DNA from: Rebecca billardiae RCC1528
Taxonomy: Eukaryota; Protista; Haptophyta
DNA: 64,000 nucleotides
Assembly: GCA_965240325.2 (NCBI GenBank)
Contig: OZ251242.1
Span: 1,364,001-1,428,000, forward strand
Direction: 5' to 3'
The notes below the pieces were generated by a model. The model had not been told where the DNA came from. It did not search any database and was given only the letters and a program-made list of their open reading frames with translations. Made by a program: the position numbers and the translations under genes. This document shows, piece after piece, positions 1 through 64,000 of the stretch (position 1 is the stretch's first letter; the number at the start of each line of letters is the position of its first letter).

Positions 1-65
1 AGCCCGCCGGTGCCAAAGCCGGCGCCACGGCCGCGCGCGCCTGCGAGAGCTCCGACGAGGCGATC

Positions 66-3440: not shown

Positions 3441-3645
3441 GTAGCTAGGCATGATACGGGCGCTGTTAACGCCTGCTGCCGGGCAGTCTCGCGCGTTCAC
3501 CAAGCTTGCCATCAGCAAGTTGCCATCAGGGAGCTAGGCAGATCTAGACCCACCACGGGCAGCAGGCGAGAGAGTGCGGCCGATCCGGCATCCGCGAGGC
3601 GGGCTTCATCGTTTGCGACGTGGACGGACCCAACCAACGGCGGCC

Positions 3646-4692: not shown

Positions 4693-5875
4693 GCCGCAGC
4701 GCGAGCGGTGCGGGCCACGCGCCAGGCGCGACATCGCGCCGATGGCGCGGATGCGTGTTGGCCGTCGTGCGGCCGACGTGTCGCGTGAGCCGTACTAGCG
4801 GCCGCGGGACTGTACGGTTGAGCCGATTCCGGCACCGTAGCTTACAGTCCGAGTCCGGGGCTCATCACTCAAGTCCAGTGACCTGCTGCTACTGCTGCGC
4901 TGATGATTTGCGGCGGGAGCCATCGCGTCGTCAGCACTGTACGTGACGACTGAGCGCCGCATCAGGCGTACTCGGACCGTGGCTCGGCGGATTGACAGTA
5001 CTACTGCGCGCGCGCTATGATCCGTAGCAGAATAACGGACGTCAGCGCTGCACCGCGGTCGCGCGCTGATTGTACGCCTGCTACGACTACGTCGGACTGA
5101 CAGAAGTCGCGACGACTCTCGCGACTTAAACTCGCCGGCGCGCTGCTCGCTGCCCAGGCCCCGGCCGCGAATGATACGGCAGTCTCAGCTGCGGCTCGCA
5201 GCGCGCGGGCCGACTCGGCTGATCATCAGCGCCGTTCTAGATCTCGGCGGATCGATCGTCGCCGCCTCCGGGATCGACGAGCATCGATCTTAGGAGTAAA
5301 ATATATATAAGTTACTATTCTAAGCACATCCGCCGCCGAGTTGATGATATCGACCGCCGCTGCTGCACCGCGTAGCAGTGCGCTGATAATCCGGTCAGCA
5401 TCTATATATCATGATTGCTTGACGATCCGGTCCCCGGGACTCGGATGCCGCCGCGATGATGGCAGCACGCGCGCCATGATCCGCGGCGGCACTGACGGAG
5501 TCGGAGAGTATAGTATAGTAGGCTACACGGACGCCGCGGCGCGGAGGCCGGAGACGCCGACGCCGACGGCGGACACGGCGCCGTCCGCGGGACGAGCCAC
5601 GCCTGCCGATGAGAGTGCCAGCAATAAGACGACTCGACGTACTCGCACGGGTAGTGAGCTAGCTTTACTCCGTGCGGCACGCACTGTATGTACGTCTGTA
5701 CGAGGGTACCGTCGTCGTACGCGGCCTAGCCGAGTACGGCGCACCCGCGCCGTGCAGCTGCGGGCCCGCAGGCTGCGCCTGCCGCCTCCAACTGCGTTCG
5801 CCAGACAGCGTCGTTGGTTCTACTGATGCGGAAAAGCCAAAAGGACCGCGCGGATGCACGCGGTCAGTATTATTC

Positions 5876-8800: not shown

Positions 8801-8916
8801 GGCGGCCGGGGCGAGGGCACGCCCGCAAGAGTGGGCGCGGGTTCGCGCATGCACGCGCCGGATGCAGTGCCGCGCGGCGTACCCTTCTTGCGCCGCGAGT
8901 TGGGCGAGTCCGCCAT
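5876..8916 (-). CDS. SEC12: Sec12/PREB-like WD40 GEF for Sar1; 4 exons (introns 8733-8882, 7402-7737, 6561-6667)
   Basis: K-loop motif GGGGGSSKTGIPNG, WD-like repeats (CAGTSDGRV, LIGTGEGEV, AHSLPVTAL, VSVSADKRC) and a C-terminal TM helix. GT-AG introns restore one frame starting at MADSPNSRRKKG. Confidence 0.8.
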
Positions 8917-9160
8917 GCGGAGGCGAGTGCGCGAGCGCGGCGGTGATGGCCTGGATGCGCGCCGTCAAGTGCCTCGCACGATGCCGCCGCCCGGACACGC
9001 CCAGCCGTGCTTGCGCAGCCGGACCTTGCTGGGTCAGTGTCCCGCTTGGCGGCTGGCGGCTGGCGAGTTGGCCGCCGCTCCTAGGCTTTTGCCCGCCAAC
9101 CGCCCGAGGCTCGGGCGACTCTCCGCCCCCCGCCCGCCAACGGCGCTCGCCCCCCTCGGC

Positions 9161-12100
9161 ATGCCGGCGTACGCGCCCGACCTGCCGGTGGAGGAGCTCG
9201 CGGCGGAGCGGCAGAGCTGCCTCGACGACATCTACTCGCTGCTCTGCACCAAGGCCGCCTACCGCGGCTTCCCGTGCCCGGAGGTGGACGCCGAGTTGGC
9301 GCGGCTGCAGGCACACGTCAGTGTGCTCGAGCAGGTGCGCCGCGCGCGCGGCGCAGCGCGGCGTGCGCCGCGCGCGCGCGCCCGAGAGAGAGAGAGAGCG
9401 CGCGCGCGCGCACGCCGCGCGCGCCCTCCGCGCCCGAGCGCGCGCCCGCGCCCGACGGGCCGCGCGCGCTCGGGCGCGCGCGAGCGCGAGCGCAAGGCTG
9501 ACCGACGCATGCGTGCCGCTGCCTGCGCGCGCGCGCGCGCGCGCCTCGCCGCCGCGCCCGCGCGCGCGCAGATGATCAACGCGAACCTCGCCGGCTGGCC
9601 CGCGCCGCCGCCGCCGCGCGCCGCGCGGCACGTCCAAGACCCGCCGCCGATGCGCCCGCCGGCCGTCGGCGGCGCGCCGCTCGGCGGCCTGGCGATGGCG
9701 CCGCCGCCGTACCGCCCGCCCGCGGCGGCGGGCGCGGCGGCGGCGGCGCTGCCTCGCGCCGCGTGGCCCGCGCCGCCCGCGCCGCGCCGCGCCGCCGCCG
9801 CCGCCCCGCTCGCGGCCGCGCTCCCGCCCGCTGGCGGCGCGGGCGGTCCGTACGCGCACGGCGGCGCGGCGCACGATGGCGCGCCCGCCGCGCGCGCGCG
9901 CTGGCCGGCGGCGTACGGCGACGCGGCGGCGTACGCGGCGTCGGCGCGTGCGCCGCCGTACGGCGCACCGCCCGGCCCCGCCGCCGCGTGGGCCCACGCC
10001 CCGCCCTTCGACGCGGACGACGACGACGAGGCGGGCGCGGACGAGCCGGCTGCGCGCTTTGGCGCAGCAGCGCTGCTCGGCCGCGAGGCCGCGGAGATGC
10101 GCGCGGTGCGCGCGGTGGACGCCGCCGAGGCGGAGGCGGAGGCGGAGGCGGAGATCGACGCAGAGATCGCGGCGGAGATCGAGGCGGAGATGCGCCGCGA
10201 GGAGGCCGCGTACGCGTCGGCGGGCGGCCCGCCGTCGCGCGTGTACATTGCGCGCGGCGGCGGCGCGGCGCGCGCGCCGCAGCCGCAGCCACCGCTGCCC
10301 GGCGCGCCGCCGCCCGTCGCGGCGCGCCCCGCGCTCGGCGGCGGCGCGGCGGCGCCGCGCGCGTCGCGCTCGGTCGGCGCGCAGGCGGGCGCCGGCGCGG
10401 AGGCGCTGCGCGCCGAGCGCGCCGCCGGCCCCGCCGCGCCGCCGCCGCCCGCCGCCGCGCTGGGCGCCGTGAGCGCGGTCGAGCGGCTCGCTGAGATCGC
10501 GGGGTCGCTGCGGCCGGAGACCGCTCCGACCAACGGGCGGCGGCACGTGGCGACGTCGGCGTGGGACGAGGGGTTCGGCGCGCGCGGCGTGGGCGGCGGC
10601 GCGGGCGGCGTCGTGCCGCCCGCGCCCGCGCGCCCGTCCACCGCCGGGCCGCCGCTCCAGCCCTCCGCCGCGCGCGCGGCCGAGCAGCGCGCCGCCGCGG
10701 CCGAGGCGCGCTTGGCCGAGCAGAGGCGGCGCGCCGCGCTCGTCGCCGCGCGCGCGCAGGGCGCCGCCGCGCTCGCCGAGGCGCGGCGGGGCGCGGCGGA
10801 GCAGGCGGAGGCGCGCGCGGCGGCGGCGGAGCAGGAGGCGCTCGCCGCCGCGCAGCGCCAGCGCATCGCCGCCCTCGGCCAGTGGGCGGAGCAGCTGCTG
10901 GGCGCAGCAGCACACGAGCCCGCGCCGCGCGCGGGGCGGCGGGTGCCGCCCGAGGTCGAGCCCCGCGGCCAGCCGCAGCCGGGCGGAGGGCCGGCGGCGC
11001 GGCGCGCGGACAGCGTCGCCGTCGACTCGGAGGCGGAGCGGCTGGCGGCCGCGGCGGCGCGGCAGCAGCAGCACGCGCAGCAGCAGCAGCAGCAGTGGCA
11101 GCGGCAGCAGCAGGCGCAGCAGCAGCGCGCACCGCTCGGCGCGGACGACGACGACGACGACGACGACGACGACAACGACGACGACGACGGCTACGCCTAC
11201 GAGGACGAGGACGAGGCCGAGGCGGACGGCGCCGAAGACAGTGGCGGCGGCGGGCCGTCGCGCGCCGACACGCTGGCGGCGCAGGCGCGCGCGCTCCTCG
11301 CCGCGATGCAGCAGCTGCGCACGCACGGCGACCCCGACGACGCGGCCGACCGCGCGCGCGCGCACGAGCTGAGTGGAGCGATGGAGGCCGTGATGGCTGC
11401 GCTGCGGGCGGAGTCGCGAGAGGCGTCGGCGCGCGCGGCGCAGGCGGACGCGGCGGCGCGGCGCGCGGGCGCCGAGGGCGGCGCGCCGCGCGCGATCCCC
11501 GAGCGCGCCGCCGACGCCGACGCCGGCGGCGCGCGGGGCGGCTCGGAGGAGCGCGAGCTGCTCGCTCACGCGCGCTCGGCGATTGAGTCGGCGCAGCGCG
11601 CGAGCGCGGCGCAGCGCGCGAGCGCCGCCGCCGAGGCCGACGGCGCCGAGGCGCAGCCGGCGCCGCGCGCGCGCCCGTCGTCGTCGGCCGCGCGCCCGCC
11701 GCCGCCGCACCAGCACCAGCACCCGCCGCCGCTTGGCGCGGGCCTGCCCGCCGCCGACGCGCCCGCCGTGCACGCGGAGGCGGCGCTGAACGCGGAGCGC
11801 ATGGGCGCGCTGCTGTCCAAGATGGCGGAGCTGCAGGCCGTGTCCGAGCGCGTGCAGGCGCTGCGCGAGCTGCTCGGCGGGCAGGGGGCGGGCGGCGCGC
11901 ACACCCAAGGCCCGACGCCGCCCGCGCACGCCGCGGCGGTGGAGGAGGACGACGAGGACGAGGAGGAGGACGAGGAGGGTGGTGGTGACGACGAGCCGCC
12001 CGCGCAGGAGACGGCCGCGGAGGCGATGGCGCGCGCAAGGCTCGAGCGCCTCCGCTCGGAGAACGACGCCGCGCAGGCGAGGGTGGACGCTGCACGCGCC

Positions 12101-15100
12101 GCGCTCGCGCGCATGCGCGAGACGGCGCTGGCGACCGGCGGCCCGCGCGCGGAGGCGGTGGCGGCGGCCGCGGCCGCCGCGCTCCGCTCGCCCGAGCGCG
12201 AGCGTGCCGACTCGGAGTCTGACGGCGCGCGCCCGCCCGAGCCCACGCCCGGCCGCATGCGCGGCGCGCCCGCCGGTCTGGGCCGCGCCGAGCAGCCGCA
12301 GCAGCAGTGGCGTCAAGAGGAGGAGGAGGAGGAGGAGGAGGAGGACGCCGAGGAGGAGGGCGGGCCGGTGCGTGCGCCGCGCGCCCGCGCGCCCGCGCGC
12401 CCCCGCGCGCGCGCCGCCCCTCCGCCGCCGGCACCGCCGCAAGACGGGGAGGTGGTGCCGCCTCGCGCCCGCCCGCCTCCGCCCACGCACCCGCCGCCCT
12501 CCGCGCCGCCCTCCGCGCAGGGCCTGGACCTGCCGCAGATGGCCGCCGTGTACTACGGCCTGGGCGCGGACGAGCTGCTCGCGCTCAGCGCCGAGCAGCA
12601 GCGGCTGCTCGTCGGCGCGTTCGTGCGCGAGCGCTTTGGGCCGCTGCTCGGCGGCGGCTCGGAGGAGGGCGAGGGGGCGGAGGAGGAGGAGGAGGGCGGC
12701 GGCGCGTGGGCGGGCGGCGAGCTGGACGGCCGGTGCGCGCCGGGCTCGCAGCCGCGCTACGCGCACGCGCGCGTCGGCCGCGGCTCCGACGTCGACCCCG
12801 TCGCCGCCGCGGCGAACGCCGACCTCGGCGACACCGGCGCCGAGCGCGCGCCGCCGCGCTCGCCTGCCAGCCTCGCCGCCTCGCGCCCGTGGGCGAGTGC
12901 GCAGCTGTACGGCGGCGCGGCAACGGCGGCCTCCGCCGCGGCCTCGCGGCCGGGCGGCGCCGAGCAGGCGGCGCCCGGCGGCGGTGCTGCCGACGCCGAC
13001 GCCGACGCGGACGAGGCGGACGGCGAGGAGGCGGAGGCGGACGCGGGCGAGGTTGAGGCGCTGAGCGCGGAGATTGGCGCGATGCTCGGCCAGCTCTCCG
13101 CACTGCGCGCGGCCATCGCGCAGCAGCGCGACTCGGCGGCGGAGGCGGCGCAGCAGGACGCGCCGCCGCCCGCCGCGCAGCAGCTGCGGCAGCAGCAGCA
13201 GGCGCAGCAGCAGCAGCAGGCGCAGCAGCAGCAGCAGGCGCGGCAGCAGCCGCAGCAGCGCTCGGCCGCGCCCCAAGACCAGCCCATCGACAACGACGAC
13301 GAGGACGAGGACGAGGACGAGGCGGGCGGGGGCATGCCCGCCGAGCTCGTGCGCACGGGCGCGCAGCTCGCCCACCGCGAGCTCGACGAGCTGATCGGCG
13401 CCGACTCCGTGCACCTGGTCGCGCTGCTGCAGCTCTTCCGCGCGCTGCTGCGCGTGCGCACGCCCGCCAAGCGGCTCGCGCTGCTCGAGCACGTGCGCCG
13501 CCTCGCCGCGGAGATCATCGGCGCGGACGACGCCGAGGAGGAGGAGGAGGACGAGGAGGAGGAGGACGACGAGGACGATGACGACAGCGGCGGCGGCGGT
13601 CGCACGCGCAAGACCCAGCTCGACGGCGCGCCCTCGCACTTCGAGTGCGCCGGCAGCTACACTGACGGCCGCGGCCGAGGCGCCGCCGCGGGCGACGGGC
13701 GCGACGGCCGGCCGCTCACCGCCGCGGGCGGCCTCCGCCCACCGCCGCCGAGCGCGGGCGCGCGGCCCAGCAGCGCCGCCGGCGGCGGGCGCGGTGGCGG
13801 CGGCGGCGGCGCCGGCGGCGGCGGCACCCCGACGATCCGGATCAACTCGCAGCTGGCGAACGAGTTCCTGCCCGGACCGGACGAGCCCTCGGCCGGGCGC
13901 GCGGCCGCGTCGCCCGCGTCCACGATCGCCTCGTCCGCGTACGACTACGCGGAGGACGTGGACGAGGAGGAGGAGGAGGAGGAGGAGGAGGACGGCGGCG
14001 TGCTCTCACCCGAGACGCGCCGCTTCCGCGCCAAGATGCAGGCCACCGCGACCGGCCGGCCCAAGACCGCGCGCGGGCCTCCGGGCGTGGACCCTTTCCA
14101 CTACGTGCAGCCCTCCCACGCGCAGCCCTCCCACGCGCAGCCCTCCCACGCGCAGCCCTCCGCGCACTCCGCCTCCGCCTCCGCCTCCGCCGCACACGCT
14201 GGCGCCGACGCCGACGCCAAGCACGACGGCGCGAGGGCGCGGCCGGGCACGGCCGGCGGCGGCGGCGGCGCGGCGGCGCAGGCCGGCGGCGCGCCGTCGG
14301 CCAAGCCGCGCGCCAACGTGTGGGCCGCCGCGGCCGAGGCGGAGGCGGAGGCGGAGGCGGAGGCGGAGGCGGAGGACGCGCTCGGCGGTACCGCCTCCAC
14401 CGACGCGGCTGTCTCCGCCGACGCGGACGGCGCCGCGCGCGAGAGCCGGCTCGTGTCCGACATGCTGGCGGACGAGTCCCTGCTCTCCGAGCTCGACGAC
14501 GCCCTGCGCGCGCTGCCCGCGGACTCGGCGCAGGGCGCGCAGGGGGCGCAGCCGCTCGAGTGGTCCTCGCTGTGCGACATCGCCATGCTGATCACGCGGC
14601 TCGTGCAGGTGCGGTACGACAACGCGGAGGACGAGCACCTGCGGTACGCGGTCTGCGACATCGTCAAGCAGGTGCGTGCGTGTGTGCGCCGTGCGTGTGT
14701 GCGCCGTGCGTGTGCGTGCGTGCGTGTGCGCGCGCAGAAGCAGCGCACGCGCGCTGCGCGCGCGCGCTGCGCGACGCACGCGCGGGGCGAGAGGCGGCGC
14801 CAACGCGCGCGCGCTCGCCCACGCGCGGCCGCGCGCCACCGCGCAGCACGCCGAGCGCCCCGCGTGCGAGCTGCGCAGCGCGCTCGTGGGCGACGTGGCC
14901 GAGCTGCTGCACAACGAGATGGTGTACGCCGAGGCCAGCGCGCGGCTGCGCGCGCAGTACGCGCACTCCGCGGGGCGGTTGCGCGCGATGCACGCGCAGG
15001 TGGGCGAGCAGCTGGGCGCGCTGCAGGCCGTGCGCGCCAAGGTGGGCGCGCAGCTGGGCGCGCTCGACGCGCAGCGCGCCGCGGACATGCGCCGGCTGCA

Positions 15101-17169
15101 GCGCGAGCGGCGCGAGCGCCTCTACCGCGGCGGCAAGCTCGGCGACGACGACGACGACGCCGACGCCGACGCCGAGGAGGCGGAGGCGTCGGAGGAGGGC
15201 GGCGCGTTCGGCGGCGGCGCGCGGCGCGGGCGCGACCTCCGGCCGGTGGGCGAGGAGGAGGACGAGGAGGAGGACGAGGAGGACGAGTCGGACGGCGCGG
15301 GCGCGTACCCGCCCGACTTTGAAGACGAGGACGACGACGACGACGAGGACGAGGACGAGGACGAGGAGGAGGACTCGTGGCATGTTGAGGAAGCGCCCGA
15401 CACGCGCGCACACGCACACGGACACGACGACGACGACGACGACGACGAGGAGGAGGAGGAGGAGGAGGATTCGGAGTCTGACGAGTTCGGCGAGGACGAG
15501 GGCGCGTCGGACGAGGAGGACGAGGACGCGGACGGCTGCTTCGACGAGTTCGACGACGAGGCGGCCTTCGACGCGCTGCTCGGCCGCGAGGCGGCGCAGC
15601 AGGCGGCCAACGCGCGTCAGCAGATGGACGCGCTGTCTGCGCGCATGGCCCACTACCTCGCAGCGGGCCACGGGGCGCACCTCGAGGACTGCAGCGAGGA
15701 CGAGGCGAGCGAGGAGGCGGAGGCGGAGGACGAGGAGGAGGCGGAGATCCGCGCGGCGAGCGAGCGCGCGGGCACCACCCTCGAGGGTCTGCGCGAGGTG
15801 AGAGCGCGGCGCAGGCGCGGCCGCCGGGCACGCGCGCGCACGCGCGGCGCGCGCACGCGCGTAGGCGCGCCGGCCCGCGGGGCCTGCGCGTGGGCGCTCA
15901 CGCCCCGAGCCACGGCGCGGCCCTGCGCCGTGCTCGCGCGCGCAGGCGTTCCGCAAGCTCTCGGAGGCGCACTCCGCCGTGCTCGACGAGCAGCACGACG
16001 CCCAGCCGCCGCCCCCCGCGCACGTGCCGGGCGCGCCCTTCAACCCGTTTGCTCCGGCATCCTCGCTGCTGCCGCGCGGCGCGCCCGCGGCCGCGGGCGC
16101 GCGCGTCGTGGCGGACGAGGCGGTGGACGCGCCCCCGGCGGCGTGCGGCGCCGGCGCGGACGAGGGCGCGGACGCGGTGACCATCGACGACCTGCCCACG
16201 CCCTCGTGCCTCGCGCTCGACAGCGCAAAGGTGGGGCCCGCCGCCCGCCGCGCGCCGCGCGCCGCCCGCCGCGCGCCGCCCGCCGCGCGCCGCGCTGCGC
16301 GCGCGCACGCGCGCGCGCCAGCTCATCATCCGAGATGCCCTCGCCCGCCACGCGCCGCGCGCCGCGCGCAGCGCTCGCGCCTCGCGCAGCAGATGCGCGG
16401 GGAGGAGCTGGCGGCCTCGCCCGCGCAGCCGCCGAGCGCGTCCGAGCTCGCGGGCTCGTCCGAGGCCGCCCTCGACCCTGACGAGTACGGCACAGGCGGC
16501 GCAGGGGGCGGCGCACACGTGCGCGCACCCACGCACCGCGCGCACGAGGGCGCGCGCGCCGCCTCGCCTCGCGCGGCCTCAACCTCGCCCCGCCCGCCCG
16601 CCCCCGCCACGCGTGCGCGCCGCCCGTCCCCCGCAGCCGAGCGGCCTGCCCGAGCACCTCGTGCACGAGTTCAAGGCGTCGCTGCACGAGCTCGGGCGGC
16701 AGTACGGCGCGGGGCGGGGGCAGGGGCAGGGGCAGCAGACGGGCGCGGAGGTGCTGCTGCGCGCGGCGGACGCGTCGGCGCAGCCGCCGCAGGTGCGCAG
16801 CGCGGCGCCGCCGCCCGGCGCGCGCGCGGCCGCTGCGAGCGCACATGCCGACCCTCGGCGCGCGCGCGCGCTGAGGCGGCTGCGCCCTCGCCCGCCGCCC
16901 TGCCCGCCCGCCCGCAGCCGCCAGCCTCCGTGTCCGCACCGGAAGGCGCCGCCGCCCTCGAGCCCGCGCCCGCCGCGGAGGCGGCCGTGCCCGCCGAGCC
17001 CGTGGCGGAGCCCGCGCCCGAGTCGCCCGCGACCGCGGCCGCTGCCAAGGCCGACGCGCGCGCGGCGGCCGCCTCGGCCGACGGCCCGAGCGGCGCGGCT
17101 GCTCCCGCGGCCGAGGGTGTGTGTGAGGGTGGTGAGGAGGGCCAGACCAACATGGAGGCCCTCGACTGA
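9161..17169 (+). CDS. PCM1: PCM1 (pericentriolar material 1)-like coiled-coil protein, ~2300 aa; 8 exons (introns 9335-9571, 12368-12520, 14672-14846, 15798-15945, 16231-16371, 16519-16636, 16793-16917)
   Basis: All introns are phase-compatible GT-AG. Three C-terminal blocks resemble PCM1_C as recalled: RELDELI...LLQLFRAL.RVRT...R, LVGDVAELLHNEMVY, and VTIDDLP...M..EE...ELAGSSEAALDP. The N-terminal part has coiled-coil and acidic tracts. Confidence 0.72.
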
Positions 17170-34372: not shown

Positions 34373-35459
34373 GCGGCGTGGCGCGGCGCGGCCGGCGCGC
34401 CGAGCGCACGACGGCGCGCGCGCGGCGCCGCCTTGTCAGCAGCCGGTGGCGCGGGGCCGTGCGCGCACGCGCGCCGCTGCATGGCAGGGCCGCGCGCGCG
34501 GGCTGCCGCGGCCGCTGCCGCACGCCGGGCGGGCGGAGGCGCACGCGGGGCTCTGGCGGGGTGGCGACCCTGCGGCGCCCGCCAGCCCGCAGCGGCAGCA
34601 GAGGGCGCGCGCGGCGGCGCGAGCGCGCTGCGCAGCGGCACTGTCGGTCCCTGAGAAGACGAGGAGGACGAGGAGGCGGAGGAGGCGGAGGAGGAGAGCA
34701 TCACTCAGCAAGCACGCGCTCGGCCGAGCAGAGATCCAGTGCGGGCATGCGTTGGTCGACTCACCGGGGCACGGCCGGACAGCGGCGTCACTGCAGGATT
34801 GACGCCGACCGCACTGTTTCGCGGATGCCACGGCCCGGGCCTCCTCTAGGGGGTCCAGGCCCTCAGCCTAGCGGTTGGGGATATTCGACAGGCCTGCCAT
34901 GTAGGTGTCTGTCGAGGCTGCCGCCTGTTGAAGTGCCCTCTAGTATGCCCCCCAGCCCAGCCCAGCCGTCAGAAGCACTCAAAACCGACTCCGCGTGCCG
35001 TCGCGCCGTCGTGCGGGCGCGCCACCTCAAAGATGTGCGGGTGCCTTTTCCGGCCACGTTCCACGAGATTTTCTTAAAACTGCACTAGCAACCGACGGCC
35101 AATCAACGCCCGGCCTGCACCAGGGGCGGTGGAGGGCATGAATAGGTTTTTGAGCAACCGCCGAGCCTGGTTGAGTCGCTCCGTTCCGGCTGAGCGCCGG
35201 TCGAACGGCCCCTCGCGGTTTGTCGAAGTCATGGACGGAGCGGGGAGCTCCCGCCGGCCACCGCGCCGGAGCTCGTCACCGCCGCCACGCGGGGAGGACG
35301 ATTGCGGAATGTCGGCGTCATCTGGCGCGGCATCAATATCGGAATCGGAGACCATGTCGTCGTGCAGTGGCTGCAGAAGAACGGCAGGCCTTCGGAGCGC
35401 GCCGGGCTCGCGCAGGTGCGCCGCGTCGTCAAGAAGTCGTCGCGGGGTCAGTGACCCTC

Positions 35460-36863
35460 ATGGTAAAGTGGTTCTACTTCGTGGAGGACTTGCCTGGCAA
35501 GACGCGCACCGCAGACTACCACCCTGCGGAGGTCTACGAGCACGTCGGCAACTGGAAGGAGGAGGAGATCGAGGTCGAGACGGTGCATGGCAAGGTGATG
35601 GTGTGGAAGAACCTTGCGGAGTTCATCGCGCGCGGGGGCGCACTGGACTTCTTCGTGAATGCATGGACCGCGTTCAAGCGCCCGAGGTGCGCCGCCCCGC
35701 CCGCGATCCCTCCCTGCGCGCGCATACCCGCGGCGCGCCAACACCGCGTGTCGTCGTCCGCCCCGTCGTCTGTGATGCCAGGCAGGGCGAGTCCGAGCCG
35801 CAGCCGTTCAAGGCCAAGCGCAACGTGCTGCATGTGGCGAACATGAATCTGACCGAGCCACCCGAGGAGGTCATCGCGCAGCTCCCGACCGCCCGCATGC
35901 CATTCGAGTTCGGTGTCGGCCTGAAGGCCTGGAAGCAGCCGGACGGCGGCATCGTGCTGCCGACGACGACAGGGGCTGCGGAGGACGGGCAGCAGCGCGG
36001 CTACCCGCTGCGGCCGTGCTTGCTCGGGGAGGCGGACGAGCACGTGCTCGATCTCGGTACGATCGGATCCCGCTGCGCGCGCGCCGTGCCCGCTCCCCCC
36101 CCGCCGCCCGTGTTGACGCGCGTCCTGCGCGCGTGCCCGCGCGCGCCGCGCAGGGCGCGATGAGATTGGCATCGCCGCGGACGCCGATCTGGTTGCGGCG
36201 TGCGTCGAGTCCGAGCGCCGTGTCGCGGGCTGCCTCGCCAGCAGTAAGGTGTATCGCCACGTCACCATCGTCGCCATCGAGCACGGCGCGAAGCTGTACC
36301 GCCCGCCGGCGGAGGCTGTGCACAACCTCGTCGCGCGGTACCGTGAGTTCCTGTGGCGGGAGCCGATGCACATTCGCGTCCGCCAGCAGCAGCAGGCGGC
36401 GATCTTCGATCGGCTGCTCACGCGCGTCGTCGCGCACTGCCGAGGCTTGCACGCAGCCGAGCGCGCATCGGTCCAGGTCGATGCCACCGCGTACGATGCT
36501 GCCGTCATCGACCTCTTCGCCGAGGACCGCCTGGGCCGCTGGCTGCGCGGCCGGTACGAGCTCGAGCTCGCATCTCACGCGAGCTTGCCGCTCGCCCCCG
36601 GCTGGCCCTTCTTCTCGATCGCTCCGCTGAACGGCAACGCGTCGGACAACTACGCCGAGATCTTCTCTCCCGCCACGACGCTCGCCGAGAGCCCGCACCA
36701 GCTCGTCCTGTTCACCGACTTCCAGTCGGTCATCGGCCTGCGCTTCACCTGGCGTAAGTGGAAGGATGTCACAGCGACCGGCGGGACAATCATCGGCGGC
36801 TCGCCGCCGCCGACCGCGGGCTACCATCCGAATAGTGGGCGGGGATGTACGCACGGCTGGTAG
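35460..36863 (+). CDS. Hypothetical 403-aa protein inside the nested element; 3 exons (introns 35687-35781, 36057-36153)
   Basis: Phase-compatible GT-AG introns join three frames into one open ORF with normal globular composition (MVKWFYFVEDL...LRFTWRKWKD). No family recognised. Confidence 0.75.
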
Positions 36864-37960
36864 GCATGACGTAGTCAGTCACGGCTCAGCACTCCAGTCG
36901 CACTATCCCGCATTGGCGCCATATTCGTTCGTGATACTCGTCAGTCTTATTCGTCGGATGAGGCCCGCGCTCGCGGGCCGCGCGGCGGCGCGGGCCGCGC
37001 GGGCTGCGCGGGCCCGACGCGTGCCACCGCCACCGGCCACTGTGGCAGCGCGCGGCGGCGCGGGCCGGATACGGTCGTGCCAGGCTCCGGTTCGGGCGGG
37101 TGGCCGGCTTAGACCCCCCTGCAAGCCCGGCGACGCCACTGCGGGTCACGCTCAGGGACGGCGGCAGAGCCGGCCCACTGACTGGTCTCGCCGCCCGCGG
37201 GTGCGCAACCGTGACCGTCAGTTCCGCGCGGGCACCAGAACTGCGGAGCACGGCCGCGGCGGCGCGGCCGAGTCGCTGTTACTGGCTGCTCGCGATTGGG
37301 ATGCAGCAGCTCTACCAGCGACCAGCCACTTGAAGCATGTACACACTCACCAAGCCTTGCCGCGCGGCAGTCACGTTTGCCCGCCACGCGTGGCCCGTGG
37401 CCGTGCCCGTGGGGCGACCGGCTCAGGCAGCGCAGCGGGGCGGCTCGCGCTCCCTGACTGTCGTTGCGAGCTAGCACTTCTGTGGTCTCCCTGCTTCCTC
37501 TCGAGACCTTGCCCGCTCCTTCAGACGTGCTCGCGCAGCACCCGTGTCGCGAAAGCTCTCGGGCTCGCGCTTGGATGGCGCATCGCATTCGTGTCGGCTG
37601 CCCGCGTGCAGTACAGCCCACGCGAGGCGCAGCCACGGCCCCTTGTCGAGAGGCTCAGATACCCCTGGGATGGCCCAACGACCCCGCTGCCGCCGCGGCC
37701 ACGGCGGGCGCGCGCCAACGCTCGCCTCCCCGAGTCGCCGCCCCGGCAGCCGGGGCGCGGCGGCCCCGGGCCGCCCGCAACCAGACCGGGCTCAGAACGC
37801 GTATTACCGGTTTGGCGGCCGTAGGTAGAGGGCCCACCCCTTGCCCTCGCGAGTCCAGGATTTGATGCAAGACCGCCAGACCAAGGGCCGTGGCCAGACG
37901 AGAGGATAGGGATTTCGTGCAAGACGGCGCCTAGTCGTGAGGAGCCTTGATTGAAGAAAA

Positions 37961-37986
37961 AGTTTAGTCAGTCGACTGACTAAACT
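37961..37986. repeat. Perfect 26-bp palindrome near the right end of the nested element
   Basis: agtttagtcagtc|gactgactaaact. Confidence 0.9.
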
Positions 37987-39801
37987 CATCTCCCCTACAA
38001 ATGTTCAGGAGATCAAGGCTAGAAGCGTCCAGAAACGGCACCCGCACATCTTTGAGGTGTGCCGGCCACTTAGTGTCACATAGAGATTCAGCGAAGTGGT
38101 ACCCACCCGTTATGGCAGCTAGATGACGGAATGCGGTCGGTAGTACTTATTGACAACCGTTGCCACTCAGTCGAAGGAATTTATGATGCAGCGACTGAAT
38201 ATTTGGCGCACCATGCTGGGCGCGTAGAAATTCAGGAAAAACAGCAGCAAGATCGAGCATGTTACCCATTTAAATACAGGTAGGTACCCGTAAATATGAG
38301 CATATGTGTACCCGTACATACTAACGGTCGATGCGAGTCCATATGTATTCAAATCAATGTCTATATATGCGGGTACATTCGAATACGGGCGCCGGAGATG
38401 AATATGGCTGTATCGGCGGGCTGTCAGCAGCACTCCTCAGCCGGCACCGGCGCCGCGTCGCCAGTCGTCCTACCCCAGCCCATGAGCCCATGCGAGGCCA
38501 CCACCGGTCTACGATTACCTCGGCTGCAGCGCCCAGCCATCGAGGCGGCCTCCGGCTCGGCGAGCTGCTCGGCTGCGATCTTCGCGCTCTCTGACTCTGC
38601 TGCCACGCCCGCCGTGCTCACCGCCTTGACCATTGTGCGGTCCGCGCGCTGCTCCGCTGTGATCGCCGCCAGATCCTCACGCCGCGCCTGGGCCTCGGAT
38701 GTGCCTGCGCGGCTGTTGGCGGCCGTGATGGCGCCAGTGGGCTCGGTGTCGCGCGCCTGCTCCGCGGTGAGCGTGACGTCCGTGCGCGCTCTTCGCTTCC
38801 GCACATCTGCTGCAGCCCCACTATCCAGGTGTGCGCCTCGGCCGTGCACAGAGAACAGGCAGGGCCAATGAACCGGCCACTCGAGGCGGAACGCGAGAGA
38901 TTCAAACCAGTAGTGCACCACCTTCTTCTTCAACAGGCCATCCTTGCCGAGCTGGGTCCATCCTCAGCGCCGTGGCCTTCTCGTGTGCCTTGAGTTGTGA
39001 AGAGCGCGCGGACGTCGCCCAGCGAGAGGTCGATGCGCTCGCGCACCCGGCACCGGTAAGAAACTAGCGGCAGGCATCGTGATGATTACCTTCAGCGTCT
39101 CGGCGTCGGAGAGAGGCGGCACACGCGACGGTGCGCGCTCCCCAACGGCTGCATGAGTGAATGCGGCGGTGGAAAGCATGCGCGCGGGAGTACCGCGGGG
39201 CCATCAGGGGGGCAGGTACGTACGCGGGAACGCTACAGATGGAAGGTACATGTGTTTGGGACCGCGTCTGTGCACCGTCTGCGTGCGCGGAGCCTGCGCA
39301 TCATCTGCAAGGGGAGCACCCTCCTCCATCTCGAGCGCATGAGCCAGCTTGAACGCGCTGGCACGCGTGCAACCTCGCGGTTTCAATGCCCGACGCCGGC
39401 GACCGATATGTCCGGGGACATCATGGTGGTCACGCAGACTCGCTCGATCGGGCGTTCTCGACGCTCGTACGCGCTCTGTCGCGCCGGGGCGACGGTGGTG
39501 ATGACCGTCCAGTCGTGCATCTCCGTCGCCGCCAGCCACTGAACAGCCCGACCCGGCCGCTCGGCGCGCGCGCTCGCGGCGCTCGAATTTATGGCGAAAC
39601 TCGCGCTCACTCCACTTGAAAACCCGTCGAGGCATTTTTTCGATTTTATTTTGGTGTGCTGGACCCCCTACCTCCTCGCGCCATGTTGATGTGGTGCGCT
39701 CATGGCCGGCGCCGGGGCGCGGTCGGTGGCCGCACAGCAGCGGCGGCGGCGCGACGAGCCCCCCTGATGCTGCATGCTGATGCGCGTGCGCTATATGACG
39801 A

Positions 39802-40033: not shown

Positions 40034-42805
40034 GGCCTGTTTTATTTCTACGAGAGCCCAAAGGCGACATTCGCCAAATACAGTGGGCTGGTCCCACTGG
40101 CGGAACCGAAATTCAAAACTATCTGACGATCGGCGCGGTCTGAGCGACTCGGAACAAAAGGGGTGCGACACACTAGCGCCGGCAGGGTACGCGCCGGCGT
40201 CTGAGCTCACCAGCGCGACTTCAGCAAAGCGCGCGGACGAAAATCAGCTCTCCGAGAGGGCCCCGGGCCTGCGCGGGGTCGCGGTCGCCGGCGCCGGGCG
40301 CGGGGATGCTGTCAGCTTCCGAGCCCGTACAGCTCGTCGCGCGCGCTCGGGGTGCGCGAGGCGACGTGGTACGACGGTAGCGTGGACCACCACCTCACGC
40401 CTCGCTGCGTCGTCAGCGTGTACAGCCCACCGCTGCCACCAGCGCCAATGTGAATGGCACTGCTCGGAACAGCTCGATGCGTCGCGCGTCGTCGTTTGCG
40501 TCGACTAGTCGCTCGGCCGGAGGTGCAGCTGACGCGCTCGCCGAAGCAGCACCGCAGACCCCGCTCGATGGTGTGCGCGGCGTGAAGTTCGCACCGAACG
40601 TCTTCTTGTGGCGAGATGCGCACCGCCCGCCGCAGCGCCCGCCGCTGCCGAGCCGGCCGCCGCTGCGCCGGCCGCCGCGCCGGCTGCCGCCGCCGCGACC
40701 GCCGTCGCTGCGCCATCAGCCGGCCCGGTGCTGCGGGCTGCCGCACTCGCCGGGCGACCACTCGAAGATGCGCGCAGCGTGACGTGCGCGGCAAGTAACT
40801 CCTCGTCGCGAGATGCGCTCCACCCGCCGTCGCGCCCGCCGCCGCGGCGTCCGCCGCCGCGGCGTCTGCCACCGCGCCGCCCGCTACAGTGCCGCGCCAG
40901 CCGCAGGCGCAGCGCCCGACCGCTGCGGCGCCCGCCCGGCTGTCACGCCCGCATTCAGCAGGCCCGGTGCTGCCGCGCTCGCCGGGCGACGAATCGATAT
41001 CGCGCGCGGCGTGACGTGCGCGCCGAGTGACTCCTCGTCGCGAGATGCGCTCTGCCAGCCGCCGCGCCCACCACCGCTGCTGCCGACTCGCCGCCGCGCC
41101 CGGATCGGCCGCCGCGCCCGCCCGACCGTCACGCCCGCCGTCAGCAGGCCCGATGCTGCCACGCTGGCCGGGCGCCGCGGTGGTCGCGGCGTTTGATGCC
41201 GTCGCAGACGGCGTGCGAAGCGCGGCGTCGGTACCCGCCCACCCTGCACGATGTTGCCGCGCTGCAACCTCAGCTTGATCGCTGACTCCACGCCAAGAGC
41301 TCGCGAAGAGACAGCCCACCCGCACAGTGGCAGTCTTCGCCCAGGAGCGCCGTATGCATAGCGGTGGGTGCGGAACGTGGCGCTCGACTTCTCCTCGGCG
41401 TCCGAGTCCTGCATCTGCTCCTGCACCAGCCCCTCCCATTCTGCGCGCGGGCGCGGAGTCGGTGCGGCCGTGCCGCACGAGGCGACGCGAGGGGCGCCGC
41501 AGCAGATGTCAGGTATGGTGACCGCGCTTCCGGCGGGCGTTTTCAAGCGGAACTTCTGGAACGCGTTGCTCACTGAAACTCGTGCGGAACCACCGTGCCC
41601 GATTTTGCACCCCGCGGACGCACGGTCGGCGCGCCGCGCGAGCACGCACCGGCGCGGGGCCCGGCTTGTGCCTCTGGTCGTGGTGCCAGTCGCCACGATT
41701 CGGCGGCGTCTTGAGCTTGCGCGCGTCCGCAATCGCCCAGGTTCGCCTCACAACTCGTGGTGCTCACTTCCCCGCCGGCTCACGCGGCGGACTTGCATTC
41801 GCCTCGCGCCACAGCGCCGCGCCTCCTCGCGGGGCACGCTTCGAAGCCGCCGCCGCCGTCCGCCGCGCAACCGCCGAAGCTTCGCCAAAACTCCGGTCCG
41901 TTGTTTTGCAGGTCCCCCAGTGAGACCCGCCCACTGTAAAACGCGGAACAATGGCGGCTTGCCCGCTGGTGCGGGCGCCGGAGCTAGTCCGGAGTAGTGA
42001 TGGCACGTCATTCGCGCATTCTCGTGTTGATGCGCTGCGCTGTAGCGAAGAATGTTGTCAGACATGCTGCCTCGCCTTGCCGTGGTGCTTCGCCTTGACA
42101 CAGGGGTCACTCGCGGTGCACGGCAGTGTGTACGATGCAGCCGGCGAGCGGCGGGCAAACCGCCGCAGCTGCAGGCCCTCTGCAAGCTGCAAGCACTCTG
42201 CCTTGGCTGCATCGCACCCGTGTCAGTTAGCGACCAGTTCACAGCCAGATGGACTGCAATCGCCACCAGCTCTAAACGCTCCGCCGCCACTACCTTGTCG
42301 AGCTTGAGATGCTTCCGTTCGGCGTGCGCTTGCATGCAGCTTGCCGCCTGCATTTGAACGTGAGCGCGGAAGGTTGGTAGGCCGGATGCTCAGGCCTCCT
42401 CGGCGTAAAATATGACAAGGTGCGTGCCACGCGCACCCATGACGCGCGGAAAGGCGTGCACACGTCTCCTGGCGCATCTGGCAGGCTGCAGTCTTGGCCA
42501 AGATGATGAGAACAAGCCTGCAATCGCTCGCCGCGCGGGCGCAGAGCGCGCGGAGAGTTTTGGGATACGACCCATGGTGTTGGATGTACCTCGTGTGCGA
42601 CAACGACGAGGCGGACGAGCGCCGCAACTGGATTCCTGCACTCACCGGTCACCGAGGAGTGCAGGAATCGCGTTCCTCGCGCACGTGGGGGCCGCCATCG
42701 GCCGTGAGAGGTACATCCAACGGGGCGTGACACCGATTCCCACTGGCGGGCAGGGGTTTGTCGCCGTGACATAGGAAATGGAATCTGGTAGAAATAAAAC
42801 AGGCC
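40034..42805. mobile_element. PIF/Harbinger-like TIR element with degenerate interior
   Basis: 18-bp TIR GGCCTGTTTTATTTCTAC (40034-40051) / GTAGAAATAAAACAGGCC (42788-42805), 3-bp flanks GGC/GGC, no intact ORF. Confidence 0.75.
40611..41180. repeat. Imperfect tandem direct repeat, ~200-230-bp unit, about 2.5 copies
   Basis: Recurring gcgagatgcgc, ggcccg(g/a)tgctgc, gccgggcg and gcgtgacgtgcgcg...actcctcgtcgcgagatgcgctc. Confidence 0.75.
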
Positions 42806-58764: not shown

Positions 58765-60729
58765 TAGGTGGGTCCCTCCCAACTGGGGCGATATTCTGGC
58801 GCACTCAGAATGACGTCCTAGATTTTGTCTCTCACCCAGAATCGACGCTATAAATGCGTCCCATCGGGGCGGAGCAAAAGTTTCGACCTCAAAACCTACT
58901 CCGCGTGCCGTCGCGCGGCCGAGCGCGCGCGCGCCGCGCCAGTAGTGTCACATAGAGATTTTGCGAAGCGTTACTTCATGGTTATGGTGGCTAGATGGCG
59001 ACATGCGATCGGAATTACTTATTGACAACCGTTGACACCCGACCGAACCATTTTATGAAGCAAAGAGTGGGGCTCTATGCTGTGCGCTGATACCTCCAAC
59101 AAACTACAGCAAGATCGAGCATATTACCCACTTCATATATAGCCACTTACCCGTATATATTATGGGTGTTACCCACTTTATATTGACCGTGGATGCGGTT
59201 CACTATGTATTCGAATTCGTTCCGATATGTGGGTACGTTTGTTGGGTCATCGAATAGGCGCCGAGCGACGCGGACACAGGCAACCCGGGCCGCAACCGGA
59301 CTGCCTGCGAGTGGCAGTGTTTGTGGCGGGCTGCGTGCCGAGGCACACACCATCGCCCGCCACCGAGCATGCCACCGTCGTCACACGGGAGCCCTCCGCC
59401 GTCGAGGCTGGACTATCAGCCAACGCCACCGCCGGAGCTTGCTGCCGCGTTCGGCGGCTTCCGTGCTCGTACTCCGCGTGTCACCGGTCGTCGTATGCCC
59501 ACCCGCGTGAGGCCGCCACCAGTCCATGACTACCGCAGCTGCAGCCCATGCCGCCGACGATGCCTCCTACCATCTTCTCGCCAGGCAGCAATACGATAGG
59601 TTCACCGACGCTGCTGCTAGGCTGAGAGCACTCAGCCAGTTGGCCGGCGAGACGTCAGATGGTTGAGCTGCTGGCCTAGCCATCACGTTGCGGCTTCCGC
59701 TCGCTCAAGTACACCCAACGTGACGACGAGAACGTGCCGGGCTATCATCAGACATGCGTCTGAGGGGTCTACTACGCCTAGCCGTAGAGTTGCTGAGTAC
59801 GAGTCTTCGCAGACCACAAGCGGAACGAGTGGGACCACCCAATGGCAGGAGCAACAGCGTGGGGTGGCACCCGCGCCTGTCAACGCGACCGCGTTCTGTC
59901 AAGAATGGACCCATATCCTGCGACCACCCTCGAGCACCGCATACTATGCCCACACTCGGCATAGGGAAGGATCGCTGAGCGCCTGCTGCCGCTGTCAAAG
60001 GCCCTGCTGATCTTCCTGGCGCTGGATCGTGCACACGGATGGCAAGTCGGCGTGCTCGCCGCACATCGCGGCGGCTTCTCAGCATCCCAAGTCCTCAGTG
60101 CACCCATCCTAGGCCTGCTGGTCGATGATTGGTACCAGCCCCCACCAAACACGCCCTCTCGGAAGTCGCCAATCGCTTACATGGCTCCCCGAGAGCCCGG
60201 GGCTGGCTGTCGTGCGTTCTCACGAGCAGCTTGCGCACAGCCCAAATGTCACCTTCACGGTGCGTTGAGCTGCTCAAGATGGCGGGAGCGTCAAGATCAT
60301 GCCCGTGCACGACACTGACCCATGCCTCCCGTCGCCTGACCCGCATGTGGCAAAAACTGACCCTGCTCGAAGGCACGGGTCGAACACCCGCCGATCGATT
60401 CAAGTTGTCTGTACGCGTCTAGCCGGGCGAGAGTCAAACATGCGGGCACGTGCCAGGCGGGGGATGTGTGACCACGGATCCCATCCGTGAGCACGCGCAA
60501 AGCGCTGGAGCGCGCGATAGGTGTTGGCTGTGGTCTACCCGACACACGGCGGCTCGGTCGCGCTGGAGAGGCGCTCCGACATCGTCGGGAGCGTTCAGAT
60601 CGGACCTCGGCCGGCGGCCGGGCGCGGCCCGGCGATTTTCCCGAGCCGCGCCCCGCGCGAAAAGAAATCAGGCCAGAAAACCCGGTAAATGTTTAAAAGA
60701 CCGCTGGAAAATCGCCAGGGACCCACCTA
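58765..60729. mobile_element. Non-autonomous hAT-like transposon inserted in the S9 peptidase gene
   Basis: 13-bp TIR TAGGTGGGTCCCT / AGGGACCCACCTA extending imperfectly (ggcgat.ttc..gcg). Flanks are cttcta[gt]c and cttctac. Shares sequence blocks with 34847-39670. Confidence 0.88.
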
Positions 60730-61724: not shown

Positions 61725-64000
61725 TCAGCGAGCCTTGACGGCGCGCGTGCGCTTGGGCGGCGCCGCGCGCGGCGCCGCCGCGGCGGGGCGGCGCTTGGTG
61801 GCAGCGGCCGATGGCTTGGCCGCAGGCGCGCCGCCGCCCTTGGGTGCGGCCGGGGGCGGTGCATTCTCCACGTCGACGGCGGTGCGGCCCGCGGGCGGCT
61901 CGTCGCGTGCGCTGCTGCTGCCGCCGTCCTCGCTGGCCTGCGCGTCGTCGGCGTCGGCGTCGTCGGCGTCGTCGTCGTCATCATCATCATCATCAGCAGC
62001 AGCAGCGCGCGGCTGTGCCTGTGCCGCGCGCGGGCGCGGCGCGGAGAGGGCGGAGGCGCGGCGTGCCGGTGCGTGAGCGCGCGTGCCGCGCGCAGGCCGC
62101 GGGCGCGCGCACGTCGCGTGCTCGCGCGCGCGCGCACCGGCGGCTTCGGCTTCGGCTTCGGGGCGGGAGCGGCTCGCGTCGAGCGCGAGGGGTGCGCGCG
62201 CTTGGCTCGCTTCTTGGCGTCGCGCCGGCTGACGAGGCCTCGGCCTCCGTCGTCCGAGCTGCTGCCCGAGTCGTCCGCCTCGGCGGCGGCCGCGGCCGGC
62301 TTGGGCGGCGCGCGGCGCGGCGAGCGCTCGCGCTTGCCGCCCGGCGTGCCACCGGCGTCGGCGGCGGCATCCGCGCCGTCCACGCCGTCCACGCCGTCCG
62401 AGGCGAGAGGCGAGGGGTACGGCCGGCGGCGGCCGCTCGCAGAGCCGCCGGCCGTCGACGCGCGGCGCGCGGTGCCGCCCGTCCGAGCCGCCGAGCCGCG
62501 CGGCGTGTGCGCGCCGCCGGCCGCGCGCGCAGAGGCGGGCGTGGGCGTGCCAGCGGGCCCGCCGCCGCCGCCGCCGCTGGCTGGGGGTGGGCCGCGGAGC
62601 GCGCCCGCGGCGTGCTTGGTCGCGCCGCTCGGCGAGAGCAGGTGTGCTCCGCCGGCCGAGCGCGCGCCGCCCGCGCCGCGCGCCACGTTGGACACGAGGC
62701 CGAACGCCGGCGGCAGCACGGAGCGCGTGAGCTGCGGCGGAGGGTCGTCGGCGGTGGGCGCGCGGAACAGCAGCGCAGGCACGTGCTGCTGCGTCGCGCC
62801 GCCGTCCGCGCCGTCCGCGCCGCCGCCGCCCGCGCCCCACACGGTGTGTTGCGCCTTGGCCGTGAGCACCGCGTGCGCCACGTCGGCCGCGACGTGGATG
62901 GGCGCGGGCGCGCCCGGCGCGGGCGGCACGCCGTGGCGGTCGACCGCGCCCTGCGCGGCGGCGCGGCGCGGCGCGCGCGGAGGGCGCGCGGGCGGCGCGT
63001 GAGCGGCCGCGGCGTTCGGGCGGGGCGGCGGCGGCTGGCGGCGCCGGCGGTCGCGAGGCGCCGCGCGCGCGCGTGCGGCCCACCTTGATGCCTGTGAGCA
63101 TGCGCAGCATCAGCGTCACGTCGCCGCACGAGCCGCCGCCGCCGGCGAGGCCGTCGTCGGCGGGCGCGGGCGCGAGCGCGCTGCCCGCCGCGTCCGCGCC
63201 GCCCGCCGCGCCCTGCGCCGCGCCGCCGCCGCCGAGCGCGGCATAGAAGGCGGCGAAGGTGAGCTGCGCGCCGTCGAATGAGCGCGCGGCCGCGTCCTCG
63301 TCCATCAGCGTCTCGTCGCGCGCCACCAGCCACACCAGCCACTGCGCAGAGGCGAGGCGCGCGGCGGCGGTGGTGCGCGGTGGTGCGGTGTGCGCTCAGC
63401 GGTGCGGCGCGCGACCCGCGCGGCGCGCGCGCGCGCGCGTCGCGTGCGCGTGCGCGTGCGCGCACCGGCAGCGCGGTCTCGGGCAGGTAGAGCGCCGCCA
63501 CGCGCGCCGAGACCGGCGCGGGCGCGGGCGGCGCCGGGCCGCCCGCGAGCACGAGCGCGCGCGACGCCGCGCCCTCGGAGTCCTGACGCGCGCGCGCCGC
63601 GACCGCCGCGCGCGCGAGCGTGGCGCGCGCGCGCCGAGCGTATGCGTGCAACAGCTCCTTGGCCGCGCGCTTGAGGGCGCGCGGCTGCGCGGCGGTGCCG
63701 AGGGCGAGGGCGGCGCAGAAGTACGCGGGCAGGTGCCGGCTGCGCGCGAGCACGCGGCCGAGCGGCCCCGCCGCCGCGCCCGGGTACGGCGCGCGCGTGA
63801 GCCGCTTGTAGCTCTGCGCGAGCGCCGCGCCCGCGACCGCCGCGTCGTCGTCTGCGCACAGCCACGCCGCGCGGTGCAGCCCGTGAGCGGGCAGGTGGCG
63901 CGCGCGCACAGAGTCGAGCGTGAGCGCGCGCAGCAGCGCGGAGTGCGCCGCGCGCACGAGCGTCGTGCGCGCCGCCGAAGGCGCCGCCTCCGAGCCCACG
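61725..64000 (-). CDS. PDS5: Sister chromatid cohesion protein PDS5-like, 3' part (introns 63342-63465, 62951-63083, ~62013-62137); gene continues beyond the window
   Basis: LYLPETALP|WLVWLVARDE...LRMLTGIK|GAVD...IHVAADVAHAVL.AK...LP..F matches the PDS5 C-terminal HEAT region as recalled; basic/acidic low-complexity tail. Confidence 0.7.

Follow-up and report, generated by a model that had tools for sequence, protein, structure and literature searches.

Nearly every cut-and-paste DNA transposon is flanked by a target-site duplication (TSD), a consequence of the staggered cut that its enzyme makes in the target. The locus described here raises the question of how a DNA element moves when this mark is missing. 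It lies in the haptophyte alga Rebecca billardiae RCC1528, whose assembly (GCA_965240325.2) comprises 72 Mb in 41 contigs. We analyzed a stretch of 64,000 nucleotides of contig 25 (OZ251242.1, positions 1364001–1428000, here referred to as the window), to which all coordinates refer unless another contig is named. Positions 35023–38059 of its forward strand hold a complete element with terminal inverted repeats (TIRs), which we assigned to a family named fam1. In the best reading of the data, fam1 and its relatives, fam2 and fam3/4, belong together as a group of DNA elements with TIRs that this alga carries and that had not been described before. The group is young, multi-family and clearly active, yet duplication-free, and the sole gene associated with it has no known catalytic domain. 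The element of the window is a TIR transposon, and there is a fair chance that it conceals a transposase of a new kind.

The boundaries of the element are sharp. It is 3037 bp long here and 3036 bp in most other copies, and a perfect 23-bp TIR (CACCTCAAAGATGTGCGGGTGCC) was located at both of its ends (35023–35045 and 38037–38059), so that it begins with CACC and closes with GGTG; the earlier note on this DNA had already described perfect 23-bp TIRs starting with CACC. The complementarity extends to 31 nt at 94%, between 35023–35053 on the forward strand and its inverted match at 38029–38059 on the reverse strand; the chance expectation is 0, and shuffled sequence gave no match. The left repeat opens with CACCNCNANGATNNNNGGGTG, a motif found throughout the group. 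A genome-wide search with the TIR returned 37 matches, representing 18 complete elements (2.9–3.04 kb) and one older copy, so the repeat is not single-copy. Moreover, the 14 reconstructed copies that were aligned are more than 99.8% identical, differing at a handful of positions, and they sit in unrelated flanks. In this alignment the copy of the window is marked by an extra C at 36095, in the second intron of its gene, and by a T>C change at 36852. Fam1 is a very young, recently amplified and mobile family.

The insertion site could be examined directly, for the element lies inside another repeat, whose left part (34847–35022, forward strand) adjoins its left end and whose right part (38060–39671, forward strand) adjoins its right end. 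This host repeat is a conventional non-coding TIR element of 1788 bp with the ends TAGGGGGTCCAG...CTGGACCCCCTA and 7-bp TSDs, which are plain in most of the copies examined. At least 17 of its copies are 94–100% identical and at least 20 are older, at about 80%. The left flank (34845–35022) and the right flank (38060–38300) are directly contiguous in at least 17 other host-repeat copies, and an 80-mer joining 40 bp of the left flank to 40 bp of the right one is present uninterrupted in five of the other copies. At this testable target, the insertion neither duplicated nor removed any base. The element was gained at this site, and its integration was exact and duplication-free. The earlier reading was right in this respect: the element is mobile, has TIRs, represents a family not described so far and was gained inside another repeat. 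The empty site that had been placed within the window itself is a different matter: the gain is confirmed by the exact empty sites elsewhere, but the supposed sister copy (58888–59216) is only a diverged relative of the host repeat, 73% identical to it. Further empty sites were sought through the flanks of two other copies and were not obtained, since in one case the flanking repeat stops short of the insertion point and in the other the flank is unique.

We then compared the flanks of 23 insertions belonging to fam1 and the related families. The agreement between flanking k-mers at these insertions was not above chance and no TSD was found, and the exact empty sites together with these 23 duplication-free insertions give a TSD of 0 bp. 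As an internal control, the same method found clear 7-bp TSDs for the host repeat. No clear target consensus emerged across the 23 insertions, apart from a weak excess of C before the element and of G after it, and no string of bases is common to their flanks and the element ends. The earlier note had seen a near-duplication of 3 bp in the flanks cgc and tgc of the window copy; this was wrong, as no base is duplicated when filled and empty sites are compared and the 23 insertions show no flank identity beyond chance, and the resemblance in the window copy is an accident.

These results bear on two explanations that build on known enzymes. The CAC termini are typical of the CACTA/Mirage/Chapaev (CMC) and Transib groups, which carry large DDE or RAG1-like transposases and leave TSDs of 2–5 bp. 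First, the element might be an ordinary CMC-type element whose 2–4 bp duplication has been blurred by mutation, as its CAC start and the cgc/tgc flanks would allow. However, the exact empty sites hold no duplication, k-mer identity at the 23 insertions is not above chance, and no Transposase_21-type protein was found; in addition, the insertions, being 99.8–100% identical, are too young for a TSD to have decayed. The empty sites and the 23 insertions exclude this candidate, and we consider it hardly credible. Second, a RAG-, Transib- or CMC-like enzyme encoded in the genome might excise the element with blunt CAC-type ends, which host end joining would then ligate into chance chromosome breaks. 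On this view the absence of a duplication would call for no new chemistry of integration, and the CAC termini and the lack of a strong target consensus agree with it. End joining, however, usually leaves trimming or filler, whereas the element ends are complete in all 23 of the 23 insertions and the testable target lost no base, and it is doubtful that such rare events would yield about 40 or more young copies. We therefore regard capture at breaks as improbable.

A kinship with CACTA, Chapaev or Transib elements had been suggested earlier, and it fails on both the TSD length (0 bp) and the transposase. The likeness consists of TIRs that start with CAC and of non-autonomous relatives that share only terminal bases and sub-terminal motifs. 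CMC termini read CAC(TA/NRTG), as against CACC...GGTG here, so that only the first three bases agree. CMC elements have TSDs of 2–4 bp, in contrast to 0 bp here, and a DDE transposase of the TnpD/Transposase_21 type, whereas Pfam finds none here on the exons or the other open reading frames (ORFs). Transib elements have a 5-bp TSD and a RAG1-like core, as opposed to 0 bp here and no RAG1-like match for two structural models. A formal parallel exists with En/Spm, in which a DNA-binding protein, TnpA, is encoded beside the transposase.

What, then, does the element encode? Strong third-position GC periodicity marks only three coding stretches on the forward strand, and these match a model of three exons with a total length of 1212 nt, which encode 403 aa and end in a stop codon. 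Exon 1 (35460–35686) starts with the ATG at 35460 and is supported by its reading frame and by the periodicity. It is followed by intron 1 (35687–35781; GT...AG, 95 bp), across which the coding phase shifts and which is read from the sequence without homolog backing. Exon 2 (35782–36056) is followed by intron 2 (36057–36153; GT...AG), which is 97 bp long here and 96 bp in the other copies, owing to the extra C mentioned above. Exon 3 (36154–36863), with the same support from frame and periodicity, ends in the stop codon at 36861–36863. Intron 2 is confirmed by two homologs of environmental origin, P0003 and P0012, which read continuously across the junction of exons 2 and 3, and exon 2 aligns to the N-terminal extensions of both at 37–44% identity. 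The single three-exon gene of 403 aa with GT-AG introns proposed in the earlier note is thus borne out by codon periodicity and, for intron 2, by homologs.

Its description as intact holds in part: the three-exon frame is open, but a stretch upstream of it (35297–35451, forward strand) looks coding in a shifted frame, which makes the 5' end of the gene uncertain. This stretch lies one base off the frame of exon 1, contains no ATG and is identical in all fam1 copies; its frame closes at a GGGG run and then the TGA at 35452–35454. It may correspond to a 5' portion of the gene that was lost or that the present model does not capture. As for the offset, the candidates are a frameshift common to all copies in a longer ancestral gene, a systematic error of the assembly at the GGGG homopolymer, or an untranslated leader. 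By eye, the upstream frame and exon 1 resemble a canonical or second BAH motif; Pfam does not support this resemblance, and we treat it as an impression only. The element could encode about 480 aa at most.

The protein was analyzed through single exons or database homologs, and structures were modelled for exon 3 alone and for the homolog P0003. Pfam gave no significant match for four coding pieces and eight homologs and found no transposase domain among them, in agreement with the earlier remark that no DDE, HUH or tyrosine-recombinase motif could be recognized. An exhaustive phmmer search against 1.84 billion cluster representatives returned 11 proteins only, and 10 of them are 30–40% identical and all come from environmental contigs of 1–2.5 kb. 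The family alignment shows invariant or near-invariant positions, for example in the block LFTDF...G(L/I)R..RRKW.D. Judging from this alignment and the searches, the protein family is real, constrained and very rare. A word-index protein search with exon 3, the family alignment and P0003 gave only self, near-self or already known members, and neither two scans of metagenome contigs nor one scan of viral contigs returned any homolog locus.

The predicted folds divide the protein into two parts. The AlphaFold2 model of exon 3, built with the small family alignment, is confident (predicted local distance difference test, pLDDT, 83; predicted template modelling score, pTM, 0.81). Foldseek found nothing similar to it in PDB or BFVD, and among 48,161 representative chains the best VIA-align hit reached only Z 3.4. 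The model of P0003, which also covers the equivalent of exon 2, has a pLDDT of 71, and its residues 43–138 behave differently in the same kind of comparison: BAH domains take all of the first 19 places among the VIA-align matches, at Z 5.2–8.3, before the next match at Z 3.9. These matches, which include the BAH domains of MTA1, DNMT1, ORC1, TNRC18, Sir3, PBRM1, EBS and MET1, align 79–95 residues with a root-mean-square deviation of 3.2–4.4 Å. Foldseek also placed BAH domains first for this model, with probability 0.96–0.98 and an E value of only 0.04, and the model is of moderate quality in the BAH-like region (pLDDT 51–78). However, neither the window exons nor the eight homologs matched the BAH profile PF01426 in Pfam, even with E values up to 1 allowed, so the region is BAH-like by fold and is not a sequence-level member of the family. 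Mapped from the P0003 model onto the window, the BAH-like fold covers 35912–36311 on the forward strand, from the second half of exon 2 to about the first 52 residues of exon 3, and is split by intron 2. The end of exon 2 and the start of exon 3 are therefore predicted to encode a fold of the nucleosome- or histone-reader type, and chromatin binding is predicted with it. Such a fold in the protein of a DNA transposon appears unusual, the readers reported from mobile elements being mainly of the Chromo and PHD types.

The remaining part is a C-terminal alpha/beta domain of about 170 residues (36318–36830, forward strand), which carries the LFTDF and G(L/I)R..RRKW.D motifs. It has no match among solved structures (Z 3.9 or less); TBP-like folds, helix-grip folds and two small proteins of archaeal viruses are echoed only faintly, all with Z below 4. 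The fold searches that had been proposed for the protein have thus recognized its BAH-like part, through the P0003 model, and not its C-terminal domain. The best-kept polar residues are R76, E168, D188 and R200 in exon-3 numbering, and D204 is conserved as well. Two further leads were set aside. PD-(D/E)xK-type families, found with P0003 in the ESM Atlas, stayed below threshold (0.85–0.87) and were not backed by the fold search, and were therefore not relied on; exon 3 gave no usable match in the same resource. A weak ubiquitin-like match of exon 1 (single-domain E about 0.2) was treated as noise.

We further focused on the families related to fam1. All of them share CACC...GGTG ends, the lack of a duplication and the terminal motif CACCNCNANGATNNNNGGGTG of about 21 bp. 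In its degenerate form this motif has 63 sites in the genome, compared with 0 in a reversed control, and all of its matches belong to fam1–4 except for one orphan on contig 27. The orphan was rejected as a further element: no partner end lies within 10 kb of it, and it seems to be a chance match. Fam2 is 2428 bp long, has about 13 mostly identical copies with the TIR CACCACGACGATTCCC and likewise shows no TSD. An example lies on contig 1 at 192945–195369 (L035:3945–6372), and there are about 12 further loci; two variants of 3.05 and 3.16 kb (L066 and L068) hold extra insertions, and an older copy (L034) is 94% identical. Fam3/4 resembles miniature inverted-repeat transposable elements: it is about 1.45 kb long, has the ends CACCACAACGATT... 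and imperfect, related TIRs of about 45 bp, shows no TSD and has derivatives of 3.3 and 4.1 kb. Its loci are on contigs 18 (L067), 16 (L064) and 36 (L065), with further sites on contigs 1, 3, 32 and 37, and no coding signal was found in it. By its coordinates, the 3.26-kb version on contig 36 (L065) overlaps, and appears to contain, a copy of the 1788-bp host repeat. Fam1 is the only protein-coding family of the group.

Part of the gene can nevertheless be traced outside fam1. Peptides of all three exons have genome matches only in fam1 copies and in fragments inside fam2; exons 1 and 2 were found in fam1 copies alone. The fragment in fam2 is a stretch of 430 bp with 74% nucleotide identity to part of exon 3, and its indels and stops identify it as a decayed piece of the gene. 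A decayed gene fragment is the usual mark of a non-autonomous derivative, which would fit fam2, and its presence there indicates that the gene was already in the common ancestor of fam1 and fam2. As far as its distribution in this genome tells, the gene is lineage-native and element-restricted. The earlier note had left three options for it, namely an unrecognized transposase, an accessory protein, or cargo moved in the manner of Pack-type elements. Since no copy exists outside the element and a decayed fragment lies in fam2, it is unlikely that a host gene was captured recently in the Pack manner, and the choice is narrowed to the first two. The same note had asked whether all homologs are flanked by TIRs; in this genome, the gene occurs only inside the element or as fam2 fragments. 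Pack-MULE and Pack-CACTA elements are similar in being TIR elements with one host-like spliced gene and no recognizable transposase, but here the genome contains no parental host gene, no autonomous partner with the same TIR was found, and the gene predates the split of fam1 and fam2.

On these grounds we propose, with about even confidence, that the protein acts in trans on the motif common to the group and that the two ends are joined to the target at one and the same position. The protein encoded by fam1 would recognize the terminal motif both on its own element and on the non-coding fam2 and fam3/4. It could itself be the transposase, or it could be an essential subunit that binds the ends or tethers the element to chromatin. 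Integration would then join both ends at the same phosphodiester position, that is, bluntly and with a stagger of 0 bp. The need for the protein in transposition and this insertion chemistry are what we infer; the mobility of the element, its exact gain, the TSD of 0 bp, the family structure, the confinement of the gene to the element and the fold assignments have been demonstrated. A bolder form of the proposal is that the protein, with its BAH-like part and its domain without structural match, is a new kind of eukaryotic transposase, unrelated to the DDE, HUH, tyrosine, serine and Cas1-type enzymes, which would recognize the CACC...GGGTG motif shared by the termini and be capable of blunt, duplication-free joining. 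We hold this form only tentatively and think it rather unlikely; if true, a new superfamily of eukaryotic DNA transposons would be founded on this element.

Several observations weigh against a direct role of the protein. Neither Pfam nor the fold searches revealed a catalytic fold or motif typical of a known class of transposases or recombinases. The candidate nucleophiles Tyr166 and Ser163 are not conserved across the family, and the few invariant residues of the C-terminal domain form no obvious catalytic set. The BAH-like reader predicted by the model would point to chromatin binding and not to catalysis, and the same may be said of the TBP-like and helix-grip echoes. Moreover, a frameshift may affect the 5' region of the gene in every copy. 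Finally, there is a variant B of fam1, with four copies (contigs 29, 30, 34 and 36), in which an 8-bp duplication causes a frameshift 16 residues into exon 3. The duplication corresponds to position 36193 of the window, whose own copy does not have it, and variant B also has a 3-bp insertion and an 18-bp deletion in its 3' part. Two of the four copies agree in their right flank, a hint of segmental duplication. Variant B has still spread in spite of its frameshift, which is compatible with help in trans but shows a copy's own gene to be dispensable in cis.

The same facts can be read in another way. Fam1–4 might all be non-autonomous and be moved by an undetected transposase that is unlinked or missing from the assembly, and the BAH-like protein would then be an accessory or a passenger, serving, for example, in targeting or in protection from silencing, with no part in breakage and joining. 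It agrees with this that the only recognized fold is that of a reader, that the protein shows no catalytic signature, and that the gene-less fam2–4 and the frameshifted variant B have spread well. However, in the scan with the terminal motif all matches but the partnerless orphan fall in fam1–4, so the assembly contains no larger partner that combines these ends with a transposase. No partner with a matching TIR was found for fam2 or fam3, and the gene is old within the lineage and confined to the element. We give this explanation a substantial but minority share of our confidence.

The proposal of a protein acting in trans on the shared motif also has to be set beside other systems that insert without duplication. 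TIR transposons of eukaryotes that leave no TSD are described for the Spy elements of the PIF/Harbinger-ISL2EU-Spy ("PHIS") superfamily (e.g., PMC4482050). The group described here shares the TSD of 0 bp with them, as its empty sites and 23 insertions show. Spy elements carry a PIF-like DDE transposase and insert precisely between AAA and TTT, whereas here Pfam gives no DDE_Tnp_4 or Plant_tran match, the targets are GC-rich without AAA|TTT, and the termini are CACC...GGTG. Helitron and Helitron2, which have a 3' hairpin and no full TIRs of the classical kind, also lack the duplication, but they differ from our elements, which have a perfect 23-bp TIR and varied targets (not A^T or T^T) and in which no Rep or helicase domain was found. 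The same lack is seen in Crypton, DIRS and IS607-like elements; in contrast to these, the present elements have TIRs, Pfam and the fold search gave no recombinase match, and no core sequence is common to flanks and ends.

As for the reader-type fold, chromoviruses (Ty3/gypsy elements with a chromodomain) and fusions of transposons with Chromo or PHD domains offer a likeness, in that the element encodes a fold that could tether it to chromatin. Fusions of readers with mobile elements, among which Chromo and PHD are highlighted, join the reader to a recognizable integrase or transposase (bioRxiv 10.1101/2021.11.30.470311). Here, by contrast, the reader is BAH-like, and its partner is a domain without a match among solved structures instead of a recognizable integrase or transposase. 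A BAH-type reader in a DNA transposon would add an example of mobile elements borrowing chromatin readers. In general, the group may open the way to a new transposition enzyme; if not, it is a clear example of elements relying on a hidden helper. Its near-identical copies, exact empty sites and small parts (a donor of 3 kb, a gene of about 1.2 kb and an end motif of 21 bp) make the system directly testable.

Some minor features of the window complete the description. The 3' part of the element (36864–38028, 1.2 kb, without assigned strand) is non-coding and shows no codon periodicity; Pfam gave nothing significant for its four ORFs, and a search of the element against Rfam gave no match. Beyond the host repeat, positions 40561–41173 contain self-similar stretches of about 69–75% identity at an offset of about 197 bp, which look like a degenerate tandem repeat. 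The alga is very GC-rich, with a G+C content of 58–83% in 2-kb windows, and extremely high values, 77–83%, are found at 1–16000 and 62001–64000.

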